The notes beneath the pieces are model-generated. The model did not search any database. It saw only the letters and a program-made list of their open reading frames with translations, and was not told the DNA's origin. DNA of 64,000 nucleotides, taken from NCBI GenBank assembly GCA_003427395.1, contig BFEA01000016.1, forward strand, positions 4,723,242-4,787,241. The letters are read 5' to 3'. This document shows, piece by piece, positions 11,267 to 39,383 of this stretch (position 1 is the first letter of the stretch; each line of letters begins with the position of its first letter). The stretch comes from Chara braunii. Its lineage: Eukaryota > Plantae > Charophyceae. A program made the position numbers and the translations under genes.

Positions 11267-11807
11267 AGAGAGAGACGGGTAGGGCTACGGCAGCTACCGT
11301 CTTCTCCCGAGCATACCGCACCCTGATAACCAAAATGTATGTAAGCTACCTTCCCGCTCAGGTACAGCCAAAATCGGGGTGCAATGTGTTGGGGGCAAAA
11401 AAAACGCCGCAAACACCACGGAAAAACAGACAAACTGACGCAGGCCTTAGCGCCAACGAATCCTACTGACACATTCGCGATTCTTTCTTTTTTCCTTTTC
11501 AGGAAACTTCGTCGAACGGTTGCCATTGTTTTTTATGTTCGGAGTGCCAACCTTAGCAAAAGACAAGGAGTCATGAAGGTTTTCTTGTTTGAAAAAAGAG
11601 GCCAACGAGGGCCAGCACCTCCACCCTAACCCAAAGTCCCCCACACTCCATGCAACTTTCAACATGAAATGACTTTGAAATGAATGATAAATTTAAACCA
11701 CCAGTACCTGGCCCAGCTATAGAGTCCGAGCCTATGCCGATCCGTACCTAGGCTCGGACTACCGGGCGCAGGCATCCCGAACGTCAGAGTGAAATGAACG
11801 AAAAAAA

Positions 11808-11889
<82 letters not shown>

Positions 11890-12754
11890 ACATTCGGAGG
11901 AAGATGAAATGCACCCGCTAGGTTGGGCGCCAAGAAGGGAGAAAGGAGGGAGGGACGGCAGAGGGCTAAGGAAGGAAAGAGGGAGGGAGGGCCGAAGGAG
12001 GAGGAAGGGAGGGTCGAGGGGGAAGGGCCAAGAGAGGAAGGAGGGACCGAAAAAGTGAGGGCCGAGGGAAGGAAGGCGGGAGGGAGAACGGAGGGCCGAG
12101 GAAGGAAGGACCGATCGATATTTCNNNNNNNNNNNNNNNNNNNNNNNNNNNNNNNNNNNNNNNNNNNNNNNNNNNNNNNNNNNNNNNNNNNNNNNNNNNN
12201 NNNNNNNNNNNNNNNNNNNNNNNNNNNNNNNNNNNNNNNNNNNNNNNNNNNNNNNNNNNNNNNNNNNNNNNNNNNNNNNNNNNNNNNNNNNNNNNNNNNN
12301 NNNNNNNNNNNNNNNNNNNNNNNNNNNNNNNNNNNNNNNNNNNNNNNNNNNNNNNNNNNNNNNNNNNNNNNNNNNNNNNNNNNNNNNNNNNNNNNNNNNN
12401 NNNNNNNNNNNNNNNNNNNNNNNNNNNNNNNNNNNNNNNNNNNNNNNNNNNNNNNNNNNNNNNNNNNNNNNNNNNNNNNNNNNNNNNNNNNNNNNNNNNN
12501 NNNNNNNNNNNNNNNNNNNNNNNNNNNNNNNNNNNNNNNNNNNNNNNNNNNNNNNNNNNNNNNNNNNNNNNNNNNNNNNNNNNNNNNNNNNNNNNNNNNN
12601 NNNNNNNNNNNNNNNNNNNNNNNNNNNNNNNNNNNNNNNNNNNNNNNNNNNNNNNNNNNNNNNNNNNNNNNNNNNNNNNNNNNNNNNNNNNNNNNNNNNN
12701 NNNNNNNNNNNNNNNNNNNNNNNNNNNNNNNNNNNNNNNNNNNNNNNNNNNNNN

Positions 12755-15700
12755 GTATGCGCCCCCCCCCCCCCCAGCCATGTTCCGAAAAAAGAAAGAT
12801 TTTTGCTTCAAGTTCGCAAATATCCATGAGCAGAAAAGATTTCACAGCCTGTAAGTAATCCGTGGTATCGGCCTACCATCCCGACCATGTCCTTCAAACA
12901 AGGGGTTCTGGCCCAGACCAAACACGGGCCTCTGGGACTGCCCCAACCAAGGGATTCTGGCAATGCCTCACACAAACAAGGGCTTCTGGCACGGCCTCAC
13001 ACAAACAAGGGATGCTGCCAATGCCTCACACACACAATGGGGATTCTGGCAAAAGACGGAACAAGGGGGATGCTGGCAATGCCCAAATCCAAGGGGTCTG
13101 TCATGACGACTCTTGAATAAGTAAATTCTACCCAGAGCCTTTTTTACATTGTTTTCTTCCTTTTTTTTTTTTTTTTTTTTTTCCAATAAAGTCCAGGGTG
13201 TTGTAGAGGCCAGTTACTAGGCTCACATTGATCGCAGGAAGCTGTCAGCCATGGTTGGCCTGAGATGAGGCTACCTCCCATCCCATCCTCGCGTCAATAC
13301 TCCTAGCGCACCCCCTATTCCTACTATCCTACCTCAGTGTGACCAGCACTCAGGACCATTACCCTACCATCGAGGGGAACTTGGACCGAACAGTAGTGAC
13401 AGGCACCACGGCTAGTGACCCAGCCCTGGTGGAAGCACAGTCGAACGAGCCTCGATGGACGGGAACTTCGGACGCCAGGCTCAAACAATCACCTATTAGC
13501 CCCTAAGTAGACCGACTAGTAACTCACGCCCTCTCTTATCATCGAGACACCTATTATTAGTTATTAGTGACCTCCTCCCAGCCCTATGGTTATGTATGTG
13601 TGTGTGTTCGGTATTGTAGGCATGTGCCTGTAGGCTATGTGTGTATGTTTGTCATGTGCGTGGACCCGTAGCAGACGCTGCCCCCCACCATGGAACATCT
13701 ACCAGTGCCTGTGTGAGCCATGTGTAGGTAGTATGTATAGGACCCTAGAAGGGCAATCTTAGAAGATCTGGAAGCGATAGCCCCGGTAATTGGCTACATC
13801 AATGACTTGCCCCAGTTTCTCTCAAGGAGGGACGACAACCTCCTGGTGGCAGTCCGTTGGGACCACTCACAACGCTTCCCAATCCACGGAGAATGGAGAT
13901 ACTCAAGGGAAGGAAAACTGGTTGCAGTACCAGTGAGCCACTCCCAAGACCCCTGGTGCTACGCATGCAAGGAAAAGGGTCACCTTTGCTCAGATGATTC
14001 TTGCCCACAGTCCCGCAAACGACAGATCAAAGGGATTGTCACCCCTCACCCAAACCAGTCGAAAACCTGGATCCCGGAAGACCCCAAGCTCACGGACTGG
14101 ATTTTCAGGGAAGGACAACACGGACCACCCGGGATCTGGGAATGGCAGGGTACTAAGATACCTGAGATATATCCGGATGGGGTTCAGTTATACAAGTCCA
14201 AAATCCAGCTGAAAAAGAATCCCCAAGCGCAGGGTCAGCCCGAACCGGCAGACAGACAACCGCTCCTCCCAGCTGCTCAAGGAACGAAGACAAGGTCTCC
14301 CAAAGTACACCCTGCCAGGTCAGCGAAATACGTCATGAAACAGGATCACTGAAGCTCTGCACCCCCCCTTCCAGGTCAGGTGCCGACTCAGGGGTCCCCA
14401 CCCCAGGCCGAACCCGACAACACTGAAGGTGAGAACGATATCCCACTGCAACACAACAGGAGGAGGCCAACCTGTCCGCAGGGAACCCCGTTTCGTAACT
14501 TGGCCTCAAACTCTTTAGTAGTAGGGCTGCCGGCCAACAATATAGCCACAGTCGCTGTGCCTCCACCCCCTACTATAGTAGAGCTACACCACGAACTCTA
14601 CTCAAACCAGCAGAACATGCAGCCCCGTCCGCTCCCATCACCGGTAGTTGAGGAAACAGCAAATGCAAACCTGCTCCTAGCAGGGCCTCAGGAGGTCGAT
14701 CCAGCTCAGCAACCCCCTACACAACCGCTCTCGCCCATCATCACAGAAATCACATCACATCCGCACCAGCAGCAGCAGCCCCCTGCTCACCCGCAGTTTT
14801 CTCACCAACCACCACCACAATCTCCTCAGACAACTGAGGGTCAACTGAGCCCCGGAGTCCTCATTGTAGGTCTGCCGGCTGTCAACAGAATCCCTCAGGC
14901 GTCCACACAGCCCATCCCACCGCGGCCGACAAAAATCAATCACCAGGTTACAATCCAACCCCATCACAGTCAGTCCAGCGGACTGTCTACATAGATTCAC
15001 AGAATATACACACAAAAAACAGGTTGGGGAGCTAGTCACTGGTGGGGTCTAGCTCTTACAGTAGGTTCAGGTAGGTTGGATAGGGTGCCATTGGGTGCAG
15101 TTCCTACTGACATTCGGATAGAACTGTCTGGTGGCTATATATAGGGCCTGTAGTTCATTGGCGTCGAAGTTCCCGTTCGACAAGGTTCGTCCGATTCCTC
15201 TTCCACCAGGGCTGGGTAACCTATCAGCCCTGGTGCCTATCACTGCTGTTCGGTCCAAGTTGCCTGCCCGTTGGTGGGCCAATGGCCCTGTGTGTGAGGT
15301 AGGATGGGGGTACGCTAGGAGGATTGACATGAGGATGGGTTGGGAGGTGGTCTCATATTCCAGGACCCCCCGGCCTCACAGATCCAGGTGATCACTGTGC
15401 ACTCACTGACTGGCCTCTACAACACCCTGGATTTAAGGGGACAAAAAAAAAAAAAAAGGTACCAGGGCTAAGCAGAGTATAGGTCCGAAATAAGCGGTTC
15501 TGGCAATTCCCCAAAGAAGGGGCTCTCACAAAGACAAAACAAGGGGCTCCGGAGTTCTGGCATAGACAAAACCAGAGGAGGAGAGGAAAGAGGAGAACAA
15601 CGACACCGCTAAGAGGCAACCCCCGTCACAGTTCCTCGGATGACAACGGACCCATCACATTACGGCAACACCATGTTCATGGCATCAGACGTGCAATGTT

Positions 15701-16160
15701 GCTTGGAGAGAAAGGAAAAAAAAACGTGGCCCTTGGTTTTGTGTTCCCCCCACGCCTTCAGCATTTGGCCAGCGTTCACTAGAAGACAGTACACTTGGAG
15801 GTAATTGGGAGGGGGAGGGCCTCATCTAGGGGGTTGTAAGACGGTTTGGACGATTTTTTTTGGGGGGGGGGTCAGAGGGAGTGTGGAAGGGGGTTCTAAG
15901 TCGCTCTGGACCCCCACGTGGGAAGACGACGTTGTAGGATGCTTGACCTGCAAACAGGTGAGGAGGAGGAGGAGAGGAGTGAGAGGATAGGGAAGGCAGT
16001 AGAACGTCACAGAAAACCACAGGACGAGTGACGTGAGAGGGTACCAAGGGCGCTTGCACGATGCCTTGGCAATTATCAAGCATAGTTTGCACAGAGCCAG
16101 GAGGGGAGGAGCAGTGTCTTCATGGTGGGGTTTGGATTTGAGAGGGGGGAAGAGGGGGGG
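12755..16160 (+). repeat. 3.4-kb block duplicated at 27282-30687 (copy 1, probable assembly duplication)
   Basis: All ORFs repeat identically at offset 14527. Both copies start GTATGCGCCCC immediately after an N gap. Confidence 0.95.
13741..14994 (+). pseudogene. LINE ORF1/gag-like remnant with zinc-knuckle-like motif, followed by a Pro/Gln-rich ORF
   Basis: VPVSHSQDPWCYACKEKGHLCSDDSCP (CX2CX4H) preceded by a beta-rich segment, as in plant L1 ORF1. In-frame stop at 14350-14352; no RT follows. Confidence 0.5.
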
Positions 16161-16203
16161 GGAGAAAAGAGGAGAGAGCCTCATAGAGCAGAGAGAGTTA
16201 GTC

Positions 16204-16241
16204 CTGTCTCTTATACACATCTAGATGTGTATAAGAGACAG
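16204..16241. other. Nextera mate-pair junction adapter (head-to-head Tn5 mosaic ends); sequencing artefact
   Basis: Exact CTGTCTCTTATACACATCT + AGATGTGTATAAGAGACAG. Confidence 0.99.
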
Positions 16242-16326
16242 GCCGATAGCTGAGCGAGGTACTGGTGGTTTAATGCACATGTCTTGAATTGATTTAAATT
16301 GTTGCAGCATATGGTGGAGGGAGCTA

Positions 16327-17362
16327 TTGCTGAGTCAAGGAATTCAAAAAACAGCCAATGTTGCGCTTCCAGACATGCAGGCTCAATATGCTCAAGGATT
16401 GATAAACTCAATAGAATTGATTGCCCAATATGCCGTGAGCAAGGCTATTGAACAAGAAAAAGGGAAGATTCTTTGGTTTCTTAATTGTTGGCCCCATCAA
16501 AACGGACTAAGACGAGGATTACAAGATTGTACTGACTTTGATGTACTAGCCTTTATTGAAGGCTGCTTGCTTCCGGAGAGGTTTCTGAACTAAGAATCGG
16601 GAGGGAGAATGCTTTGTTGTTGTAAACACCCTCGATGGTGCTATTAGTTGCAATGGTTTTCGGATACTTTGCCGCAAAGGGGCCCACAATTCTTGCCAAT
16701 CGACCAAGGTTAAAATGTTTCGCCGATCTTATAAAAAATGGGTTCAGACCGAGGGGTTCTTGAGGAGCAAGCCCCTCCTATGACTAGAGAAAAAAAATGT
16801 CAATCCTCCGAGAAGGTATAATGGAGAGGATGCGTATACAAAAAGAATGGTCATATGCCGCCTCACTTCGAGACTTCTGCATTATGACTTACTTGTGGAA
16901 GAGTTGGCAATGGGGTGGGAAAGGTTTGCGCCTTCAAGAGAAAGAGATAGCCAATGAGACACTGATTGTTCAACAAAGTCATACCAAAACTCAACGATAC
17001 AGTCATTCGATGGTAATAAAGCTTAGGCGACCCCGAGAAAATGGAGATACTTTTTTAGAAATATTCGAGGAAATGAAGAGATATTACTTATCTTCATGGA
17101 AGGACTTGAGCAGCGGGCCTATTTTTCGAAGCACACAAAAAAAAAAAGGTTATCCTTAAATGTTTTCAACAGAATCTTTAAGAAATGGTTGATCGATCTT
17201 AAGATAAATAATCACGAGAGTAGTCATAACTTTCGAGTTGGAGGCGTTCGAGAAGGAATACGCAAAGGTTGGACATTCGAACAGATGCTCACAAAGGGTT
17301 TTTGGAAGAGTTTCTCATACTTTATTAGATGTGGTTTTGGATGTAATCATCAATCCTCATAA
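16327..17362 (+). pseudogene. Tyrosine recombinase of the DIRS-type element (frameshifted)
   Basis: LRDFCIMTYLW, SHTKTQ, GPIFRS, SSHNFRVGG (HxxR box II) and GFWKS, spread across three ORF pieces. Confidence 0.85.
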
Positions 17363-17810
17363 CTTGATTGAGATCCTTTTTGCTACTAGTCCGAACTTAG
17401 CAGGATTCGAAACGCCTGCTGGCACCCGCTTACTTGGTAAGCAAGTTAAATGGCATATATCCAAGGAAAAGAAGCCCAAGCAATCGAAGAAGATGATAAA
17501 ATGGTACCATGCTGTCACGGTGGACGCCGAAGTAATGAGGAAGTATTCCCCTCCGTTCTTCTTCATGCACTTGATAATAGGTCTAATTAGGCAGGTTGGG
17601 GGGGAAATTCATCGGTAAGGTTTTCGAGGTAGATTAATCAAATTCAGGGGTAAGGCATCCACCTTCATACATCCCCTGCTCAGATTTGTTGAGATTAAGG
17701 TAGGGCAAACGTAGTGAGGATCTGAGGCAAAAAGGTCGGTGGTTGAGAATCCGAATTCTCTTATCAAAAGAGTGACAACGTGGTGGGGAAAACCTCAATC
17801 TGTTGCATCT
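17357..17810 (-). pseudogene. DIRS-type DNA N6-adenine methyltransferase-like domain
   Basis: TDLFASD, VDAL, ISPPTCLIRPII and LIT...AWY lie directly after RNase H, matching the DLFAS / (N/S)PP / WY pattern of DIRS MT domains. Confidence 0.7.
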
Positions 17811-17814
17811 TGGA

Positions 17815-19330
17815 GTTTTAACAAATTATCGGTCTCCGTATTAAGAGTCCTTGGAACCCATACTGGTCTCAATGGACAGTCAAACTTTAGCAGCAGGGTA
17901 GTAATTTCACGTAGCATTCGATTCATTTACTCCACATGGGTGCCCAAACTTTTCAAAAGAGCAGTGATTTCAACATTATCACATATTAGCTTTATAACTC
18001 CTTTATCCATAACTTCTTTCTACTTAGAGCATATGAGATCCAAAGTTACTGGGACACCAAATAGTTCCCTATGGTTACTTGCAGTACTGATCATGTTGTT
18101 TGGGAGCATGAAGTTCACAGACTTTTTGAGCCTAGTTCCAATAACAATTGCACCAACTGCATTTTCGAATGCGTCAGTTCGCACGGTAACGGAGATCTCT
18201 TGCAAAGGCCAATAAGTTCGTTTGAGGGATGCCAAGTTTGTTTCCTACTATTACAAATTTTGAAGGACCTAAGTGGATAGTGGAAGGTTGAGATTCCAAT
18301 TGCTAGGATGGATGACCTTATGGAGGTAAGAACAAAAGGCAGCCGCAGGAGAGAAGGCCCTAGCAAGTGCTACCAACTTTCCGACAATTAAGAAAGTTCT
18401 CTACTGGAAACCATAGGTAACTTTCTTCTTTAAACCAAAATCAATGAGATGTTGTTTGCTTTCTCTTATGGGATAGTGATACTTTTCTTGTGAGAATCTA
18501 CCATGAAAACCAATACCTTGACTCTTTGAGATGAGAGGAAAAAACGTTTGTTGATGCTTAGAAAGAAACTTAATTTTCGTATCAGGTAAGTGTAGAGGAA
18601 AGACTGCTACAAAGATTGAAGATAAATTTCAGACGTTAGTAACGAGTCGTCAATGTAGGAGAAAATTCTTACTTCAAAAATTTTGAGTGTGACTATAATT
18701 TTTTGCATGAATGTTGTGAAAATCCAGCATGCAGAAAAAAAAATGAAAACAAAATTTTTTAAAATGGTAAAACTTTTTCATTCAAAATCAAGGTAAGGTT
18801 GAGACATCTTGTTCACTTTCACATGATAGTAATAATTTTTGACATTATAGGATGTGAGAAAATCATTGAGAAAGACTTTAGAGCAGGCGCCCTCAACATC
18901 AGAGACAGACTCATTGTGAAATTTTGGAAAAGAGATGAAGAGGTTCACAAGTCGCAAGTCCATGATAAATCTCAGTTTGGAGGACCTTTCGAGTACGAAA
19001 ATTTGATTAATAACAATCGGATTTTATGAATCTTCGATAACATCATGGGCCATCAAAGTTTGAATTGTCTCAATAATAAAATCCTTGTCCCTAACGGAGT
19101 GCACGTAGGAAGGAAACTGCATTTCAAGGCTCTTATAAATTTTATTTTTGTCATCTCAGGCTTTACCCTTCTAACAATTTCTTCTATCTTGCGAGGATCA
19201 TTGTGAGAAGTTCCCCTAAAGTTGAAGGTCACTCTTCTTTCGATCAAAAAAATGACTTCCCTTTAATCAGATGTCTCATGCCATTTACGCAATTGAGTTC
19301 ACTCAGAAAGATAAGAGGCTAGTGAATTCC
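17815..19330 (-). pseudogene. DIRS-type reverse transcriptase and RNase H (degenerate)
   Basis: RT: KLRFIMDLRLVN, YYHVKV and SYIDD (YIDD at 18646-18657). RNase H: RTDA, NHRELFGV, ICDN and WVPRTLNTETDNL. Confidence 0.85.
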
Positions 19331-19399
19331 CTACGAAATTTTCGGTCTTTAATCTTGTGTCATTCAAAGGTAAGAGATAATCATTTGAGCGTCCTCCAA

Positions 19400-20850
19400 G
19401 GAGGGCAAGTGCTGAAATCCTGCCAATAACTCATTCATGGTGAAGCATGGCTTCATGATCTAAGAACCCGGTATCCTGACCACCTTGATTTTGTTGTTGG
19501 TACCCTCCCTTTCCCCCCCCTCTCGAGTTCTTCTTCTGGTTCTGCTGACTTGGGTTATTTTCTTGATCAATGTCTTTCCTGCAAGAACGAAAAATATTGG
19601 TTAGTTGAAACGTACCTAAGGTTGAATCTTATTGGAGGAGATTATGAGGTTGGCTAAGCAATTTCAAAATAACCACGACTCCCACCGAAAAACGTCGTGA
19701 AGCTAAACAGTAGCCTCTAACGGGGTTAAAATAGATCCATAAAATTCACCAATAATCTAATTGCTTCACCTTTCTTATTCTCCCCTTTGAAAGCAAGGTT
19801 GAATTGAGGTGAGTTAACTATGTAGCTTGCGACTTTAAGGAAAAACGACAAAAATGCACGTTGCCTAATAATTATTACTTTTGGACAACAATATATTTGT
19901 ATAGGTGTATGTCAGACAGTAGCTTGGGGAAAACCTTCATCATGGACTTGACATGACTTTGCTCAAAAAATTGTTGAGTGAGCTTAGATAAGTCCTCATC
20001 GCATAACAACTCGGGATAATCAATGGTTTTGTACCTGAATCTCTTAGTTTTCTGCCTCCCATAAGACCAGTGCATGTAATTGAGGTAGACTTGCATTGCC
20101 CTGACTACCAAGTTTACATGGTGCCACAAAGGTTTCTTTCCGTAGCACCAAGCCAGGACTTCAACTTCTTCAGCAGCCAGACCTTTTTTGGGTCTGAGAT
20201 AGACAATTATCTTGAGCTATCACTCTTCTTGGAGACTGATGTTGATGGTGCCTCTGCCCCTTGGAGACTGCCAGCTACAAGGTTGAAGGAAAACAACTTG
20301 AGGTTTCGACGGAGTTTTCTCCTGCAAAAGGGTTGTTTCACCCCCCCGCCAAGTGACCCAAAGCTCTATTTTGCATGTGGTTGAAAGCACCGGTTGCAGT
20401 ATTGAGAACATTGTGACCTCCACCAGTGGAGCCAACTGCATCTGGGGTCTGCGGTGCAACAACTGCAGCGTACGGATGATGGTTACCCCCCCAAATAATG
20501 TCTGCTACATTCTGGGCTTGAGTAGCGACACTTGCAGATTGCGAAGTTCCCGAAATTTATTGGAGGAGGAGGTTCGGGTTTGAATTTTGCAGAAAATGAC
20601 CATCAGGTTGAGGCAGCATGTGATTGCCCATTCTGTTCAAGACCTGGTTTATTGCGCCTCTAGTCTGCAGATTCATTGAACCGTTGACGTGATTGTTGAA
20701 GGTTCTTTGAATGTCATAATGGTGATCGAGTAACTGATAATCTGAGGTTATTTTCTTCTTCAACCGGTACCTGCGCTTAACATCTTCGTCATCATCAAGA
20801 TCAAAGACATGCAGCGTTCCATCCTGGTTCCTTTAATAAGTCATTTTGAT
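19400..20850 (-). pseudogene. Putative gag/ORF1 remnant of the DIRS-type element
   Basis: Broken minus-strand ORFs (19875-20129, 20220-20462, 20557-20763) upstream of RT. Called on position only. Confidence 0.35.
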
Positions 20851-21579
20851 CAATGGCATGAGGGCTAGGTCTGATTTGCCTGTGTCTGTTCTTCTGATAT
20901 CAAAAAAATATTCTTCTATTTTTTCGCAGTGCAAATTTAGCCAATCGATGATCTCGCCTTCATACCAATCATTGCGGGGTTGATCAGGAAAAAAAACCAA
21001 GTCACCTTCATGGTAGGTGTTCCTCGAGTTTGAATCAGGGCCTTATGGGGAAATACAAAACTACTGAACATTGAGGGATGTTTACAAGAATGGTCCGGAT
21101 TCCCCCCCTCCCCCCCCTTTTTTTTTTTTTAGAGAGAGCAAATGAGTTAGGCAGTGACCCTTCTGGTCTTAATTCCAAATGTTCTTAGTAAAAACAGTGA
21201 GTGGGTTGAAAATCCCCTGTCCTGTTTTTTTTTATTATATACAGACGCCATCAATCTTTTGGATTCGTAATTAACTGATTTTCGAAATTCATTGCTTTCA
21301 TAAAGTGTAAATCCAAGGTCGAATATCAAGGTCAATCGTTTCTCCCCCCCTTTCTTCTTCTCTTTTTTTTTTTTTTGCTGCAATGTTCAGTCTTTCAGTC
21401 TACCTTTCCCATTTGGGTTAAACTTTTCGACGGAATTACAATGGTAGTTTTTTAAAAGGTTCGATTTGAAATCAACACAACTCGTGGGTTGTGCAAATGC
21501 AAAATTTTGTCCTAATGCTTAAAATATTTATTTTTGAAGTGGGAAATACCCCAAATATTGCAGCTTGCTAAAGCTGCGG

Positions 21580-22180
21580 ATGCTTTGCTGCGTCCGATAC
21601 TACTGGTGCTACTACAAATATCATTGTTTCTGCTACGACTACTACTAATGCATCTGCTATTGCCACTACTTACTGCGGATGAAGCTTCTACAATTGCTTC
21701 TTCACCTGTGATTACCAACACCGTTTGCTGCGAAGTTACTACTACTAGTTGCTACTGCTGCTACTGCTACTGTTAATTTTGGTTACTGCTGCTATTGCTG
21801 CAACTACTGCTAGTATTGTGCTCATAAGTGCATCGACATAAGGATACAATAAAATGTGCGCGCCGAGTTTGGGTAGAGTGCGAAATTAGTTTGAAGACCG
21901 ATTAATGTAATTGTGGGATACATAATTCGCTGACCTTTCTTCGATAAATTATTAGTACTACTTCTGCTGCGGCCGTTGCCGCAATCTCTGTTGACGCCTA
22001 TTCCAAGGTTACTGTGGTTGCTTCTTCAACTGCTGTTTTTGCTACTGCTGCCCTTAATGAAGACAATTTGTCCTTATTTTTACTAATGTTGTTTCGACTG
22101 CCACTGCGACCGTAGCCTGCTGCTTGCATCGATTACTGTTGCTGTTTCTGCTGCTAAGGCCTCTAATGTTGCTGCTGCTA
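21580..22180 (+). repeat. Degenerate (CTG/CTA)n trinucleotide region
   Basis: Seen directly. Confidence 0.75.
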
Positions 22181-22717
22181 GACGGATGACTCCACAACTC
22201 TGCAAATTGAAGGGCATGTAGATTTGGTCGTGATCTTTCCACAAAAAAATATTTAATTAAAAAAATATATATATTTAAGATCGTGAAATAAATGTCGTGC
22301 CAAGTCGTCTCATTTCCTACTGTTGCCACTTTACCACGTGTGGCCCAACGGGAAAACTACCCCAACTTCAACGATTTTTCGACGTGATCTTTCCAGGAAA
22401 AGTAAGTAAGAAATTAAAAAAAAAAATCATTTCAACTGCGAAAAAAAATCACGACGGCAATTCGATGCATGTACATTTTGTTGCTTGCCAACTCTTCCCA
22501 CTGTACTACCGGTAGCCCTCATGAACCTGTGCGACCGGTCTCCCCGAATTTCAGAAGGCGGGGGCAGTAGTGGTTTAACTATTTATTAGGAAAAAAACAA
22601 ATATGAACACTTCTTAGGGGGTGCGGGTTTTGTGTGTGGCGATGCATGATATGGATCCAAGTCCGAAGTGTGGAGGGCAGGGGGCTGGCCCACGACTTTG
22701 AAAAAAAACTACTCTAT

Positions 22718-22886
22718 GACACACAGACCACACACAACGTGACACACACGCACACACGCATACGGGGCCACACACACACATATGCATAGACACACAGACA
22801 GACACATACACCCCCACAAACGTGACACTCACACACACAAACACACACACACACAAACACACCAACACACACACACACANACACAN

Positions 22887-22931
<45 letters not shown>

Positions 22932-23110
22932 GGGCACACACACACATACACATACAAATAGGCAAACAGATACACACACACACACACACATACACATGCA
23001 GACACACAGACACACACACACACATATACATACACACACACAGGGGCACACACACACAGACACACACACACGCACACACATGTGATACACACACGGACAT
23101 GCACACAACC
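22718..23110 (+). repeat. Degenerate (CA)n microsatellite
   Basis: Seen directly. Confidence 0.95.
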
Positions 23111-23112
23111 GC

Positions 23113-25512
23113 ACTCTACACTACGCTATGACACTCTACTCTACGACACTCTACTCTACGATAGTCTACTCTACTCTACTTCACGACACTTTACTCTATG
23201 ACACTCTACTCTAGGACACTTTACTGTACGTACTTTACCCTACTCTACGACACTCTACTTTATTCTACTTTATTCTACTCTACTCTACTCCCGACACTCT
23301 ACTCTACTTTAATATACTCTACGCTACGACACTTTACGACACTCTACTCTACTCTATTCTACGACACTGTACTCAACTCTACTCAACTCTACTCTACTCT
23401 ACTCTACCCACTCTACACTACTCAACTTTACTCTACTACACTCTACTCTACTACACTCTACTCTACTCTAAGACATTCTATAATACTATATTATTCGACA
23501 CTACTCTACTCTACTCAATGATACTTTACTCCACAACACTCTACGGCACTTGATTTTACTCTACTCTACGACACTCTACGACGTTTTACTTTACTCTACG
23601 ACAATCTACTGTGCTCTACGACACTCTACTCTACTCTACGATGTTGTACTCTACTATACGACAATCTACTCTACTGTACTCTGCAACACTTTATGACAGT
23701 CTACTCTACGACACTCTGCTCTACTCTACGACACTATATTATACTCTACTCTACTCTATGACTCTCTACTCTACTCTACTCTACTCTACGATACTCTACG
23801 ATACTCTAAAATGCTATACTTTACGACATTGTACTCTACTCTGCAACATTCTACTCTTCTCTATGACGCTCTACTCCACAACACTATAAAATACTCTACT
23901 CTACGACACTCAACGACACTCTACTCTACGACATTCTACAACACTCTACTTTACTCTACTCTACTCTACTCTTCTCTACGACACTCTTTTGTATTCTACG
24001 ACACTGTACGACACTCTACAAAACTCTACTCTACTCTACTCTACTCTACTATACTCTACTCTACTCTACGACACTTTACTCTACTCTACTCTACTCTACT
24101 CTACGACACTCTACGACACTCTACGACACTTTACTCTACTATACTCTACTCTACGACATTATGCGACACTTTACTCGATTATACTTCACACTACGACACT
24201 CTACTCTACCCACTCTACAATACTTCACTCTACTCTACTATAAGACACTCTAAGACACTCTACAATACTCTACTCTACGCGACGACACTCTGTCATACTT
24301 CCTCTACGACACTCTTCGACATTCTACGACATTGTACTCTTCGACACTCTACGACACTTTGCGACACTGTACGATGCTCGACTCTACTTTATTCTACTAT
24401 ACGACACTCTACGACACTTTACTCTATTTTACTCTATGACACTCTACTCTACGATACTGTACTCTACTTTACGATAGTCTACTCTACTATACTCTGTGAC
24501 GCTTTATGAAACTCTACTCTACTATACTATACTCTAGGACACTCGGCTTTACTCTACGACATTGTACTCTATTCTACTCTACTTTACTCTACGACACTCA
24601 ACGACACTCTACTCTACTCTACTCTACTCTACGACACTCTACTCTACTCTACTCTACTATGCTTTACGACACTCTACTATGCTTTACGACACTCTACTCT
24701 ACTCAACTCTACTCTACAACACTCTATGACTTTCTTCTGTACTCTATGAAACTATATGACACTCTATGGCACTATACAAAACTATACTCTACTCTACGAC
24801 ACTTTTCTCTACTACACTCTTCTCTACGACACTGTACTCTACTATACTCTACTCTACGACATTATACTCTACTCTACTCTACTCTAATATACTTTACTGT
24901 ACTCTACTCTACTCTATTCCACTTTACTTTACTCTATACTCTACTCTATGACACTCTACGACACTCTAGGACATGCGACCCTACTCTACTATAGGACACT
25001 CAACGACACTCTACTCTACTCTGCGACAGTCTACTCTACTTTACGACACATCACTCTACTCTACTCTATGACACTTTACTCTACTCTACTCTACTCTATT
25101 GTACTCTACTCCACTTTATGACACTCTACGACACTCTATGACACTTTGCTCTACTCTACTCTACTTTACTCTACTCCACTTTACTCTACTCTACGCTGCT
25201 CCGCTCTACGACACTTTGCTCTACTCTACGACACTCTACGACACTTTACGACATTATGAAAAACTATACTCTACGACACTTTGCTCTACTCTACGACACT
25301 CTACGACACTTTATGACATTCTAAAAAACTCTACTCTACGACACTTTACTCCCATATACTCTACTCTACGACACTTAACTCCCATATACTCTACTCTACG
25401 ACACTATACAACAGTCTACTCTACTCTATTCTACTTTACTCTACTCTACTCTACTCTACTCTACTCTACTCTACTCTACTGCACTCCACTCTACTCTACT
25501 CTACGACACTTT
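23113..25512 (+). repeat. 2.4-kb (CTACT)n satellite with recurrent CTACGACACT variant
   Basis: 5-bp periodicity throughout; it generates the spurious YSTLL ORFs. Confidence 0.95.
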
Positions 25513-27281
25513 AAAAAATCGCGGAAGTTCGAGTACTTTTTCTGTTGGCCAACACGTGATAGAGCAGCAAAAAACACCAAAAATGAAATATAGGACGAAT
25601 TTGGCACGCCATTTATTTTGCGATTTAAAAAAAATATATTAAATATTTTAAATATTTTTCGTGGAAATATCACGACCAAATCTACAAACCCTTCAATTTT
25701 AAGAGTTGTGGAGTCATCCTTTTGATCGCAAAAAATTGCGAAAGTTGTGTTTTTTTTCTCGTTCGCCAACACGTGCCAGGATGACAAAAATAGAAAATGT
25801 AACGAAACGGCGCGACATTTATTTCAGAGTCTATTTTTTTTGTTTTTTTTTATACATTTTTTCTGCAAAGATGACAACCTAATCTGCAGGAACTCAAATT
25901 TTCTGATTTTTTCTTCGATTCGTCTGAGCGCGAAAAATCGTCAGAGTTGGCGCTTGAAAATTGTGGGACTGGACCCGCCTGACACACTGTGCAACGTTAG
26001 GGTTTGGACACAAGGCACATCCTGACCTGCCAGCTGCCTGACATCGGATACACTTCCTAAAGAAGCAGTCCCCAAAAACACACAGGGACCCAATCGACCT
26101 GAGTGCTTATCAGATCAGGCAGTTGTGTATCTCAAATCTGTGGGTGGGTTCAAACCCGACGACAGCCATTGGCAGCGAACTTCATAATCTTAATATTTGT
26201 GTGTGTGTGTGGGTGGGTGGTGTGTGTGTGCGGGCAGGTGGGTGGGTGGGTGGGTGGTGGAGGGGTGCAGGCGGGGGGGGGGGGGGCAGGTNNNNNNNNN
26301 NNNNNNNNNNNNNNNNNNNNNNNNNNNNNNNNNNNNNNNNNNNNNNNNNNNNNNNNNNNNNNNNNNNNNNNNNNNNNNNNNNNNNNNNNNNNNNNNNNNN
26401 NNNNNNNNNNNNNNNNNNNNNNNNNNNNNNNNNNNNNNNNNNNNNNNNNNNNNNNNNNNNNNNNNNNNNNNNNNNNNNNNNNNNNNNNNNNNNNNNNNNN
26501 NNNNNNNNNNNNNNNNNNNNNNNNNNNNNNNNNNNNNNNNNNNNNNNNNNNNNNNNNNNNNNNNNNNNNNNNNNNNNNNNNNNNNNNNNNNNNNNNNNNN
26601 NNNNNNNNNNNNNNNNNNNNNNNNNNNNNNNNNNNNNNNNNNNNNNNNNNNNNNNNNNNNNNNNNNNNNNNNNNNNNNNNNNNNNNNNNNNNNNNNNNNN
26701 NNNNNNNNNNNNNNNNNNNNNNNNNNNNNNNNNNNNNNNNNNNNNNNNNNNNNNNNNNNNNNNNNNNNNNNNNNNNNNNNNNNNNNNNNNNNNNNNNNNN
26801 NNNNNNNNNNNNNNNNNNNNNNNNNNNNNNNNNNNNNNNNNNNNNNNNNNNNNNNNNNNNNNNNNNNNNNNNNNNNNNNNNNNNNNNNNNNNNNNNNNNN
26901 NNNNNNNNNNNNNNNNNNNNNNNNNNNNNNNNNNNNNNNNNNNNNNNNNNNNNNNNNNNNNNNNNNNNNNNNNNNNNNNNNNNNNNNNNNNNNNNNNNNN
27001 NNNNNNNNNNNNNNNNNNNNNNNNNNNNNNNNNNNNNNNNNNNNNNNNNNNNNNNNNNNNNNNNNNNNNNNNNNNNNNNNNNNNNNNNNNNNNNNNNNNN
27101 NNNNNNNNNNNNNNNNNNNNNNNNNNNNNNNNNNNNNNNNNNNNNNNNNNNNNNNNNNNNNNNNNNNNNNNNNNNNNNNNNNNNNNNNNNNNNNNNNNNN
27201 NNNNNNNNNNNNNNNNNNNNNNNNNNNNNNNNNNNNNNNNNNNNNNNNNNNNNNNNNNNNNNNNNNNNNNNNNNNNNNNNN

Positions 27282-30200
27282 GTATGCGCCCCCCCCCCCC
27301 CCAGCCATGTTCCGAAAAAAGAAAGATTTTTGCTTCAAGTTCGCAAATATCCATGAGCAGAAAAGATTTCACAGCCTGTAAGTAATCCGTGGTATCGGCC
27401 TACCATCCCGACCATGTCCTTCAAACAAGGGGTTCTGGCCCAGACCAAACACGGGCCTCTGGGACTGCCCCAACCAAGGGATTCTGGCAATGCCTCACAC
27501 AAACAAGGGCTTCTGGCACGGCCTCACACAAACAAGGGATGCTGCCAATGCCTCACACACACAATGGGGATTCTGGCAAAAGACGGAACAAGGGGGATGC
27601 TGGCAATGCCCAAATCCAAGGGGTCTGTCATGACGACTCTTGAATAAGTAAATTCTACCCAGAGCCTTTTTTACATTGTTTTCTTCCTTTTTTTTTTTTT
27701 TTTTTTTTTCCAATAAAGTCCAGGGTGTTGTAGAGGCCAGTTACTAGGCTCACATTGATCGCAGGAAGCTGTCAGCCATGGTTGGCCTGAGATGAGGCTA
27801 CCTCCCATCCCATCCTCGCGTCAATACTCCTAGCGCACCCCCTATTCCTACTATCCTACCTCAGTGTGACCAGCACTCAGGACCATTACCCTACCATCGA
27901 GGGGAACTTGGACCGAACAGTAGTGACAGGCACCACGGCTAGTGACCCAGCCCTGGTGGAAGCACAGTCGAACGAGCCTCGATGGACGGGAACTTCGGAC
28001 GCCAGGCTCAAACAATCACCTATTAGCCCCTAAGTAGACCGACTAGTAACTCACGCCCTCTCTTATCATCGAGACACCTATTATTAGTTATTAGTGACCT
28101 CCTCCCAGCCCTATGGTTATGTATGTGTGTGTGTTCGGTATTGTAGGCATGTGCCTGTAGGCTATGTGTGTATGTTTGTCATGTGCGTGGACCCGTAGCA
28201 GACGCTGCCCCCCACCATGGAACATCTACCAGTGCCTGTGTGAGCCATGTGTAGGTAGTATGTATAGGACCCTAGAAGGGCAATCTTAGAAGATCTGGAA
28301 GCGATAGCCCCGGTAATTGGCTACATCAATGACTTGCCCCAGTTTCTCTCAAGGAGGGACGACAACCTCCTGGTGGCAGTCCGTTGGGACCACTCACAAC
28401 GCTTCCCAATCCACGGAGAATGGAGATACTCAAGGGAAGGAAAACTGGTTGCAGTACCAGTGAGCCACTCCCAAGACCCCTGGTGCTACGCATGCAAGGA
28501 AAAGGGTCACCTTTGCTCAGATGATTCTTGCCCACAGTCCCGCAAACGACAGATCAAAGGGATTGTCACCCCTCACCCAAACCAGTCGAAAACCTGGATC
28601 CCGGAAGACCCCAAGCTCACGGACTGGATTTTCAGGGAAGGACAACACGGACCACCCGGGATCTGGGAATGGCAGGGTACTAAGATACCTGAGATATATC
28701 CGGATGGGGTTCAGTTATACAAGTCCAAAATCCAGCTGAAAAAGAATCCCCAAGCGCAGGGTCAGCCCGAACCGGCAGACAGACAACCGCTCCTCCCAGC
28801 TGCTCAAGGAACGAAGACAAGGTCTCCCAAAGTACACCCTGCCAGGTCAGCGAAATACGTCATGAAACAGGATCACTGAAGCTCTGCACCCCCCCTTCCA
28901 GGTCAGGTGCCGACTCAGGGGTCCCCACCCCAGGCCGAACCCGACAACACTGAAGGTGAGAACGATATCCCACTGCAACACAACAGGAGGAGGCCAACCT
29001 GTCCGCAGGGAACCCCGTTTCGTAACTTGGCCTCAAACTCTTTAGTAGTAGGGCTGCCGGCCAACAATATAGCCACAGTCGCTGTGCCTCCACCCCCTAC
29101 TATAGTAGAGCTACACCACGAACTCTACTCAAACCAGCAGAACATGCAGCCCCGTCCGCTCCCATCACCGGTAGTTGAGGAAACAGCAAATGCAAACCTG
29201 CTCCTAGCAGGGCCTCAGGAGGTCGATCCAGCTCAGCAACCCCCTACACAACCGCTCTCGCCCATCATCACAGAAATCACATCACATCCGCACCAGCAGC
29301 AGCAGCCCCCTGCTCACCCGCAGTTTTCTCACCAACCACCACCACAATCTCCTCAGACAACTGAGGGTCAACTGAGCCCCGGAGTCCTCATTGTAGGTCT
29401 GCCGGCTGTCAACAGAATCCCTCAGGCGTCCACACAGCCCATCCCACCGCGGCCGACAAAAATCAATCACCAGGTTACAATCCAACCCCATCACAGTCAG
29501 TCCAGCGGACTGTCTACATAGATTCACAGAATATACACACAAAAAACAGGTTGGGGAGCTAGTCACTGGTGGGGTCTAGCTCTTACAGTAGGTTCAGGTA
29601 GGTTGGATAGGGTGCCATTGGGTGCAGTTCCTACTGACATTCGGATAGAACTGTCTGGTGGCTATATATAGGGCCTGTAGTTCATTGGCGTCGAAGTTCC
29701 CGTTCGACAAGGTTCGTCCGATTCCTCTTCCACCAGGGCTGGGTAACCTATCAGCCCTGGTGCCTATCACTGCTGTTCGGTCCAAGTTGCCTGCCCGTTG
29801 GTGGGCCAATGGCCCTGTGTGTGAGGTAGGATGGGGGTACGCTAGGAGGATTGACATGAGGATGGGTTGGGAGGTGGTCTCATATTCCAGGACCCCCCGG
29901 CCTCACAGATCCAGGTGATCACTGTGCACTCACTGACTGGCCTCTACAACACCCTGGATTTAAGGGGACAAAAAAAAAAAAAAAGGTACCAGGGCTAAGC
30001 AGAGTATAGGTCCGAAATAAGCGGTTCTGGCAATTCCCCAAAGAAGGGGCTCTCACAAAGACAAAACAAGGGGCTCCGGAGTTCTGGCATAGACAAAACC
30101 AGAGGAGGAGAGGAAAGAGGAGAACAACGACACCGCTAAGAGGCAACCCCCGTCACAGTTCCTCGGATGACAACGGACCCATCACATTACGGCAACACCA

Positions 30201-30687
30201 TGTTCATGGCATCAGACGTGCAATGTTGCTTGGAGAGAAAGGAAAAAAAAACGTGGCCCTTGGTTTTGTGTTCCCCCCACGCCTTCAGCATTTGGCCAGC
30301 GTTCACTAGAAGACAGTACACTTGGAGGTAATTGGGAGGGGGAGGGCCTCATCTAGGGGGTTGTAAGACGGTTTGGACGATTTTTTTTGGGGGGGGGGTC
30401 AGAGGGAGTGTGGAAGGGGGTTCTAAGTCGCTCTGGACCCCCACGTGGGAAGACGACGTTGTAGGATGCTTGACCTGCAAACAGGTGAGGAGGAGGAGGA
30501 GAGGAGTGAGAGGATAGGGAAGGCAGTAGAACGTCACAGAAAACCACAGGACGAGTGACGTGAGAGGGTACCAAGGGCGCTTGCACGATGCCTTGGCAAT
30601 TATCAAGCATAGTTTGCACAGAGCCAGGAGGGGAGGAGCAGTGTCTTCATGGTGGGGTTTGGATTTGAGAGGGGGGAAGAGGGGGGG
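27282..30687 (+). repeat. Copy 2 of the 3.4-kb duplicated block
   Basis: Apparently identical to 12755-16160; diverges at a poly-G run. Confidence 0.95.
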
Positions 30688-30740
30688 GGGGGGGGTGTTA
30701 AACTTAAAACTGCATTTCGTCAAAATGGACATTGTTTATT

Positions 30741-38388: not shown

Positions 38389-39348
38389 GATCTCAGGTCG
38401 GGCGGGAGCACCCGCCCAACTTAAGCATATAACTAAGCGGAGGAAGAGAAACCAACGAGGATTCCCTTGGTAGCGGTGAGCGAACCGGGAATAGCCCAGA
38501 CTGAAAATCCGGGGGCTCTGTTGCTCCCTGAATTGTAGTCTTGAGAGGCAACCTCTGCAGGTTCCCTGGAAGGGGACGCCGAAGAGGGTGACAACCCCGT
38601 CGACCGCCGGACCCTGCTGCGCAACGAGGTGTTGTCCAAGAGTCGGGTTGCTTGGGAATGCAGCCCCAATTGGGTGGTAAGCCCCATCCAAGGCTAAATA
38701 TGTGCGAGGGACCGATAGCGAAGAAGTACCGCGAGGGAAGGATGAAAAGAACTTTGAAAAGAGAGTTAAGGAGTGCTTGAAATTGTCGAGCGAGAAGCGG
38801 ATGGAGGGGAAGTCATGCGCTCCCGTCTGGGCAGGGGTGGACGGCGACTGTGTTGTCGCCCCCCTTGTTGGACGTGGGGTGCCTGCCAGCATGGGCTGCT
38901 GTGACCGGCATTGCGGTGGGGAGCGATTGAAACCCCCCACGGGTGCCCGTCACGGTAGTCGAGGACCTTGAGCACGCGCCTCTTTCGGCGGGCCCGTTCG
39001 GGTTCCTGCGTGTTCGGGATGCTGGCGAAATTCCTCTATCCTGCCCGTCTTGAAACACGGACTGAGGAGTTCAACGTGCATGGGAGCCGGTGGGTGATNC
39101 GGTGGGTGATTAGCCCACGAGGCGGAAGAAACCTGAGTGGCGGGAACCCTCTGTGGGTGCACCGTCTGCCAACCACGATCTGCTGTGAGAGGTTTGAGTG
39201 TGAGCATGCCCGTTGGGACCCGAAAGATGGTGAACTATGCCTGAGCAGGGCGAGGCCAGAGGAAACTCTGGTGGAGGCTCGCACAGCGATACTGACGTGC
39301 AAATCGTTCGTCGGACTTGGGTATAGGGGCGAAAGACTAATCGAACCG

Positions 39349-39383
<35 letters not shown>
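38389..39383 (+). pseudogene. Dispersed 5' fragment (~1 kb, D1-D3 region) of nuclear LSU (26S/28S) rDNA, possibly with the end of ITS2
   Basis: ACCCGC..AACTTAAGCATAT...AAGCGGAGGA; GAGTCGGGTTG; AAGTACCGCGAGGGAAGGATGAAAAGAACTTTGAAAAGAGAGTTAA; CCCGTCTTGAAACACGGAC; GACCCGAAAGATGGTGAACTATGCCTG. Truncated after CCGAAGTTTCCCTCAGG. Confidence 0.95.

Follow-up and report, generated by a model that had tools for sequence, protein, structure and literature searches.

The stretch of DNA analysed here, referred to as the window, comprises 64,000 nucleotides of the charophyte Chara braunii (contig BFEA01000016.1 of assembly GCA_003427395.1, positions 4,723,242 to 4,787,241 of the forward strand). Between position 16243 and about position 21100 it very probably carries one old, inactivated, low-copy insertion of a tyrosine recombinase (YR) retrotransposon, belonging to the DIRS order and having a layout of the kangaroo/PAT type. 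Six-frame reading of 16243-21130 places a gag-like region, a conserved part of pol preceding the reverse transcriptase (pre-RT), the reverse transcriptase (RT), RNase H and a Dam-like methyltransferase (MT) on the minus strand. On the plus strand there is a YR at 16300-17362, spread over three frames and lying tail to tail with pol. The RT with its YIDD motif, the RNase H and the MT on the minus strand and the YR on the plus strand had been proposed in a first-pass annotation made from the sequence alone, and all four are found where it placed them, backed by homology searches.

The characteristics of the DIRS order are present, in that the RT and RNase H are of the long terminal repeat (LTR) retrotransposon type in sequence searches and a tyrosine recombinase is found instead of a DDE integrase. 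There was no Pfam match to rve or RVP (protease) on any stop-free piece, which is a weak absence in a decayed copy. A Dam-like MT following the RNase H is a feature of the DIRS1-like elements and the PAT group, as opposed to Ngaro/VIPER. Szitenberg et al. describe the DIRS group as the MT-encoding YR retrotransposons and place kangaroo, from Volvox, in its PAT subgroup (PMC4157794). The inverted YR that marks kangaroo is shown by the window copy and by two related loci, L001 (contig BFBZ01002423.1, NCBI assembly GCA_003427375.1) and L005 (environmental contig Ga0598241_0109471, JGI sample 3300064063).

Several observations weigh against this assignment. No terminal or internal repeats were seen in the copy on self-comparison of 16243-23200, therefore the choice between PAT and DIRS1 is made by gene order only. 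Neither for Dam nor for Phage_integrase does any Pfam score reach the gathering threshold. The L001 locus is without an MT domain. Finally, the spacer found between MT and YR in kangaroo is absent, the two frames overlapping instead by 6 nt in the window and by 15 nt in L005.

The convergent joint of pol and the recombinase

The pol and YR frames run into one another in the window such that each stop codon is the complement of the last codon of the opposite frame. The abutting convergent stops, TGA on the minus strand (17357-17359) and TAA on the plus strand (17360-17362), are as described in the first-pass annotation. A DNA contig of 1028 nt (run X1) spans 16749-17776, and therefore the pol/YR joint, with no differences from the window. 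This excludes an error of assembly as the origin of the joint.

The same arrangement is found in the two related loci. P0001, the closest relative of the window RT, sits on L001, a decayed locus in which a gag-like open reading frame (ORF), RT and RNase H are on the plus strand in that order and a YR ORF of 333 amino acids (aa) is on the minus strand. At 2345-2490 of L001 the end of the RNase H directly abuts the C-terminus of the antisense YR, and the MT domain of approximately 420 bp is absent. L001 is either a deletion derivative or a member of an MT-less subfamily. Within 179-1558, L005 carries an intact YR of 397 aa (P0037) and, antisense to it, an end of pol. The latter is an open ORF of 66 aa, truncated where the contig stops, and it aligns to the C-terminal end of the window MT with the conserved stretch RVPxGxSNPxxFGL. 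The end of pol overlaps the YR gene here at 1358-1372, with both ends open.

The presence of the overlap in the apparently intact L005, together with the same convergent order in L001, makes the tail-to-tail overlap a family trait, of which the 6-nt overlap in the window is a decayed form. DNA identity between the window and L001 or L005 is only ~70-76%, over short stretches, and neither of these is therefore the locus of the window. More distant relatives differ in their arrangement. In L004 the YR box (HSLRSGG...GRW) is in a downstream ORF on the same strand as pol, and in L006 and L007 all of the genes are on one strand. The family represented by L005 may still be active in some organism.

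Domains on the two strands

The gag-like region matched no Pfam family. Its piece at 19878-20216 on the minus strand has 25% identity to the gag ORF of L001 (E=1.6e-9). No CCHC pattern was found in the minus-strand frames of 19400-22600, in what is a decayed copy. The pre-RT part of pol resembles the ORF at 1282-1620 of L001 when compared by eye, with the common stretch GTSHN.P.KI.E..R.VKP. The RT is interrupted by internal stops at 19024-19026, 18778-18780, 18607-18609 and 18466-18468, beyond which there is a frameshift into the RNase H frame.

A phmmer search with the 81-aa piece of RT between two of these stops (18781-19023 on the minus strand) identified 29 proteins at E<=1e-3 among 1.84 billion representatives, the best at 7e-14. 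When these RT relatives were returned to the window by tblastn, 19113-18391 was matched, down to E=5e-23. P0001 is the closest of the relatives at 48% identity, the others being at ~33-43%. The longer of them (P0003, P0025 and P0028) are polyproteins of RVT_1, RNase H and the Dam family PF05869. Pfam searches with single stop-free pieces were set aside, having given weak matches only (RVT_1 at E=0.11; Phage_integrase at E=0.0038), the pieces being too short. The same RT relatives also match, at lower scores, a second and unrelated Ty3/gypsy-like RT/RNase H at ~49625-47853 on the minus strand of the window.

RNase H and the MT domain occupy a single minus-strand frame, 18400-17360. The D/E/D/D positions of the RNase H are at 18167-18184, 18056-18073, 17969-17983 and 17819-17836 on the minus strand, and the domain was also matched by tblastn with P0017, P0003 and P0025. 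The MT motifs of the window are DLFAS (17723-17737), VDAL (17651-17662) and ISPP (17594-17608), the last of which is NPP in the family consensus. This last motif reads ISPPT in the window and follows a stop, whereas the relatives keep both DLFAS and NPP[W/F/L/P].

Two profiles, one of RNase H plus MT and one of MT alone, were made from an alignment of 11 RT-RNaseH-Dam relatives and run against all six frames of the complete window, stops being written as X. The former scored 51.9 bits (E=2.4e-15) and the latter 27.6 bits (E=8e-8), and for both the sole location in the window is 17980-17490 on the minus strand, the MT match lying at 17776-17490. An MT had been called at 17357-17810 in the first-pass annotation, and this call is upheld by a profile match that is unique in the window. 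The PF05869 Dam scores of the relatives themselves are 21-25 bits, below the 28.1-bit cutoff. Among the proteins found with the MT region of P0025, five of the seven others carry a precomputed Dam match. For the 83-aa C-terminal piece of the MT, the closest language-model look-alike is a cluster named 'Dam domain-containing' (0.92). A search of PDB sequences with the MT profile returned noise only.

An AlphaFold model of the family MT domain was made from alignment A1 (pLDDT 74). The structure nearest to this model is a cap-specific adenosine-N6 methyltransferase (Foldseek E=7e-3, TM 0.54-0.58; VIA Z 8.8), followed in VIA by Erm/KsgA, T4 Dam (Z 6.5), E. coli Dam (5.9) and TaqI (5.5). Against the C-terminal domain of eukaryotic RVT_1/RNaseH/Dam polyproteins the model has a TM of 0.74-0.78. 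On the basis of this predicted structure, the reading of the domain as a class I S-adenosylmethionine (SAM) methyltransferase fold, probably of the adenine-N6 kind, stands.

On the plus strand, the N-terminal region of the YR has stops at 16591-16593 and 16781-16783 and a frameshift near 16590. The catalytic domain keeps the K (HTKTQR, 16980-16997) and the HxxR (HNFRVGG, 17225-17245). The first-pass annotation had read the catalytic Arg as Trp (WQWGG) and the catalytic Tyr as Cys (FIRC), and both replacements are confirmed against the WQRGG and FIRY/FMRY of the relatives (Table 1). P0037, which has the JGI name 'integrase' and was found by searching with the 333-aa ORF of L001, aligns to 16300-17356 on the plus strand; the alignment passes through three frames and has 50% identity over the catalytic core. 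P0037 holds the complete R ... K ... HxxR ... W ... Y pattern. The window catalytic domain has 46-52% identity to the YR of L001.

Pfam Phage_integrase matches the window piece at E=0.0038 and P0037 at 2.9e-4, both below the gathering score. A word-based protein search with a 111-aa piece of the YR found nothing, this search covering proteins of 61-194 aa only. PDB sequence searches with the YR piece and with a YR profile gave only noise, and the intact YR, modelled with AlphaFold on an alignment of six rows, gave a structure that was unusable at pLDDT 37.

In language-model features P0037 is near several tyrosine recombinase clusters at 0.98, including a cnidarian 'ALOG/Phage integrase' cluster at rank 6. 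However, neither the whole of P0037 nor its residues 60-215 gave a match to the Pfam ALOG_dom family (PF04852) at E<=10, and the insert at the position of the ALOG zinc ribbon has a single Cys. The YR is therefore not filed as ALOG-type. An ALOG-type reading of the YR N-terminus was likewise set aside, the resemblance being at the language-model level only, with no Pfam match.

Table 1. Coordinates and strands of the features identified in and beside the element.
Feature	Position in window	Strand	Remarks
Nextera mate-pair junction adapter	16204-16241		19-nt mosaic end, then its reverse complement; not part of the element
Very high-copy motif of ~31 nt	16243-16273		first genomic bases after the adapter
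YR N-terminal (DNA-binding-type) region	16300-16780	+	two frames; aligns to residues 21-190 of P0037
YR catalytic domain	16788-17362	+	stop TAA 17360-17362; frameshift in poly-A run 17137-17148
Trp codon TGG at first catalytic Arg position	16911-16913	+	WQWGG in the window, WQRGG (CGT, CGC) in relatives
Cys codon TGT at catalytic Tyr position	17330-17332	+	FIRC in the window, FIRY/FMRY (TAT, TAC) in relatives
Overlap of the convergent frames (TCATAA)	17357-17362		6 nt; TGA minus 17357-17359, TAA plus 17360-17362
Dam-like MT domain of pol	17360-17794	-	one internal stop, 17609-17611
RNase H with RT-RNase H linker	17798-18400	-	seven in-frame stops
Reverse transcriptase	18430-19155	-	YIDD 18646-18657; four internal stops
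Conserved pre-RT part of pol	19056-19430	-	frame differs from that of RT; two stops
gag-like region	19878-21042	-	two frames; no CCHC pattern seen in the decayed copy

State of the copy and its edges in the assembly

There are at least 14 internal in-frame stops in the copy, with 2 in the pre-RT, 4 in the RT, 7 in the RNase H and linker and 1 in the MT, and at least 5 frameshifts, of which at least 2 are in pol and 3 are in the YR. With all of its reading frames broken and two of the YR catalytic residues replaced, the copy cannot transpose. The first-pass view that it is dead is thus borne out by the stops, the frameshifts and the changes of Arg to Trp and Tyr to Cys. The element is covered over 16248-21096 by DNA contigs from the likely source sample, at a word depth of ~10-17, equal to that of the single-copy flank, with a few variant contigs over 16326-16539. 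No second copy of the element was found in the window by self-comparison. In two oligo-dT RNA runs, of which 6-12% of the reads were sampled, no reads were found on the element at >=90% likeness, although silence is not proved by this sample; such reads as there are fall on the adapter and on the 31-nt high-copy motif alone. The CpG observed/expected ratio is ~0.6 both inside the element and elsewhere in the window, and is uninformative. The copy is an old, essentially single-copy, apparently silent relic.

The left edge of the element, given as 16242 in the first-pass annotation, is a chimeric join and not a true edge. The adapter at this join is an exact match on both strands, with 0 expected by chance, and none of the X1 or X3 DNA contigs extends across it. 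Its depth reaches millions, with many different flanks, and the RNA reads found there run on into Nextera adapter sequence. Because the sequence stops at this mate-pair adapter chimera, the element lacks its 3' end here, which precludes mapping of the terminal repeats. The missing part is that beyond the YR start, 3' terminal in the orientation of pol, where an element of PAT type, the split direct repeats of which have the order A1 ... B1-A2 ... B2, would carry B1-A2-B2. The 5' end is undefined as well, since the contigs break at a homopolymer run near 21097-21130.

A block of 3408 bp to the left of the adapter (12755-16162) is repeated at 27282-30689 with 100% identity. Both copies of the block begin directly after N gaps (12125-12754 and 26292-27281), and the first ceases to match the second at a poly-G run (16153-16162) that lies 41 nt ahead of the adapter. 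It appears that the scaffolder inserted a single contig at two places. With an untrimmed Nextera junction and a duplicated 3.4-kb contig on the scaffold, element boundaries and neighbourhoods here are not to be trusted.

The 31-nt motif that follows the adapter has a word depth of ~1.7e5 in the DNA contigs, against ~10-17 for the element, and is also present in the oligo-dT RNA reads, with variants at 16253, 16256 and 16258. A related copy is at 11693-11720 on the minus strand, and the flanks differ between copies. The motif has no Rfam match at the gathering score.

Other features of the window lie to the right of the element. A long CA/TG microsatellite at 22600-23120 is followed by a degenerate tandem array of ~2.4 kb (23100-25500), the translation of which reads as TLLYSTL-type repeats. 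At 38411-39360 on the plus strand, isolated among repeats, there is a fragment of eukaryotic large subunit (LSU) rRNA in two pieces, corresponding to model positions 24-954 of 3401 in Rfam RF02543.

Mechanism, alternative readings and known systems

In the published model of DIRS/PAT replication (PMC6681497 and PMC4157794 in general; PMC7192593 for the intermediates of DIRS-1), an intact element would be transcribed from its 5' end. The RT and RNase H would copy the full-length RNA, using the split terminal and internal repeats, and the resulting DNA would be inserted into the genome through recombination by the YR, with no target-site duplications formed. In the layout seen here the YR is antisense to the genomic RNA and so cannot be translated from it, which means that the YR needs a promoter of its own. 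This promoter would presumably be in the 3' part of the element. The transcripts of pol and YR would then be expected to converge and overlap.

The intact L005, with its 15-nt overlap, suggests that selection acts on the layout in some charophyte-like organism alive today, which would make the convergent transcription of a YR retrotransposon testable. A tentative extension, to which little credence is given, is that the window copy, L001 and L005 belong to a possibly uncatalogued charophyte lineage that is PAT/kangaroo-like. Its pol, at the MT, and its YR would have a short, fixed 3' antisense overlap forcing convergent transcription and a separate YR promoter, and the YR could be a streptophyte-side relative of the ALOG-type DIRS recombinases, which are the presumed source of the ALOG transcription factors of plants. 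Apart from this extension, the window copy puts on record, for the streptophyte side of the green lineage, a case of the layout with an MT and an inverted YR.

It is unlikely that the element represents an undescribed streptophyte family that is defined by the tail-to-tail overlap of pol and YR and has an MT acting as an N6-adenine methylase to mark the element's own DNA. The recurrence of the overlap in the intact relative L005 is in keeping with such a family, as is the finding of one close RT relative (P0001) among the 1.84 billion representatives, with the rest at ~33-43%. However, the combination of MT and inverted YR, which the first-pass annotation had taken as a possible sign of an undescribed family, is already published for kangaroo and for a Daphnia PAT element (PMC4157794; PMC3266345). 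Nor are YR retrotransposons new to the host, since DIRS and Ngaro are known from Chara braunii and Klebsormidium nitens according to the Penium preprint (10.1101/835561), which cites the Chara genome paper. DIRS1-like elements were not detected in streptophytes by Piednoel et al. in 2011 (PMC3266345). In the Penium preprint, DIRS and Ngaro are reported from the two algae and not from land plants (10.1101/835561). Work after 2011 has counted streptophyte DIRS only at the level of repeat annotation.

An active MT would agree with the DLFAS and NPP[W/F/L/P] motifs kept by the relatives and with a predicted fold nearest to the N6-adenine methyltransferases. Against this, the role of the DIRS MT domain is given as 'unknown' (PMC6681497). 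For the ALOG-type subgroup, Iyer and Aravind regard the domain as catalytically inactive (PMC3537659), and the account of de Mendoza et al. goes no further than calling the MT domain Dam-like (PMC5890265). The self-marking of element DNA with N6-methyladenine that was suggested in the first-pass annotation is without evidence.

A DIRS1-like element proper, having inverted terminal repeats (ITRs) as well as an internal complementary region (ICR) rather than the split direct repeats of PAT/kangaroo, and with its YR inverted, is improbable. The MT domain is common to DIRS1-like and PAT elements (PMC4157794), and with no termini visible the window copy is compatible with either type of repeat, however inverted YRs have been described only within the PAT group (PMC3266345; PMC4157794). 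An accidental convergence, either of a Crypton-like YR DNA transposon beside a truncated retroelement or through an assembler join, might be thought of as the assembly is demonstrably chimeric 1.1 kb to the left, but it is extremely improbable when the same junction has conserved protein on both sides in L005 and L001 and is covered in the window by the difference-free 1028-nt contig (16749-17776).

The probable DIRS-order insertion of kangaroo/PAT-type layout can be set beside the known systems. The DIRS1-like elements (Dictyostelium DIRS-1 and those of animals) and the metagenomic RT-RNase H-Dam relatives have in common with the window copy an RT, an RNase H, a Dam-like MT and a YR that is not a DDE integrase, their MT motifs being DLFAS, NPP and WPSQPW. 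They differ in having the YR on the strand of pol, as in L004, L006 and L007. DIRS1 itself has ITRs and an ICR and a YR that overlaps pol in the orientation of pol, whereas the YR of the window is opposite; neither ITRs nor an ICR were seen in the window copy, the 3' end of which is missing. The ALOG-type DIRS1 elements of Ectocarpus and cnidarians (Iyer and Aravind 2012) share the MT domain and the language-model resemblance of the YR. They have the MT and YR on the same strand, however, and P0037 has no match to ALOG_dom.

Kangaroo, from Volvox carteri, has a host in the green lineage, a pol of RT, RNase H and MT, and, downstream of pol, a YR encoded on the other strand (PMC4157794; PMC3266345), a likeness to the window copy that is drawn from published descriptions and not from sequence comparison. 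The gag of kangaroo is without a zinc finger (PMC4157794), as is that of Toc, and no CCHC pattern is present in the window, although in a decayed copy. Kangaroo differs in having internal repeats (B1-A2) between MT and YR (PMC4157794). In the window and in L005 the pol and YR frames overlap, and there is therefore no room for internal repeats in this position.

The 'novel' PAT element of Daphnia pulex (Szitenberg et al. 2014, Fig. 1G; PMC4157794) is also MT-bearing with an inverted YR. It has an animal host, and its inversion is viewed by its authors as homoplasious with that of kangaroo; here too the comparison is by description only. The internal repeats of the Daphnia element adjoin the 3' terminal repeat and are not between MT and YR (PMC4157794). 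The absence of a spacer in the window copy would therefore appear to be a better fit to the Daphnia arrangement than to that of kangaroo.

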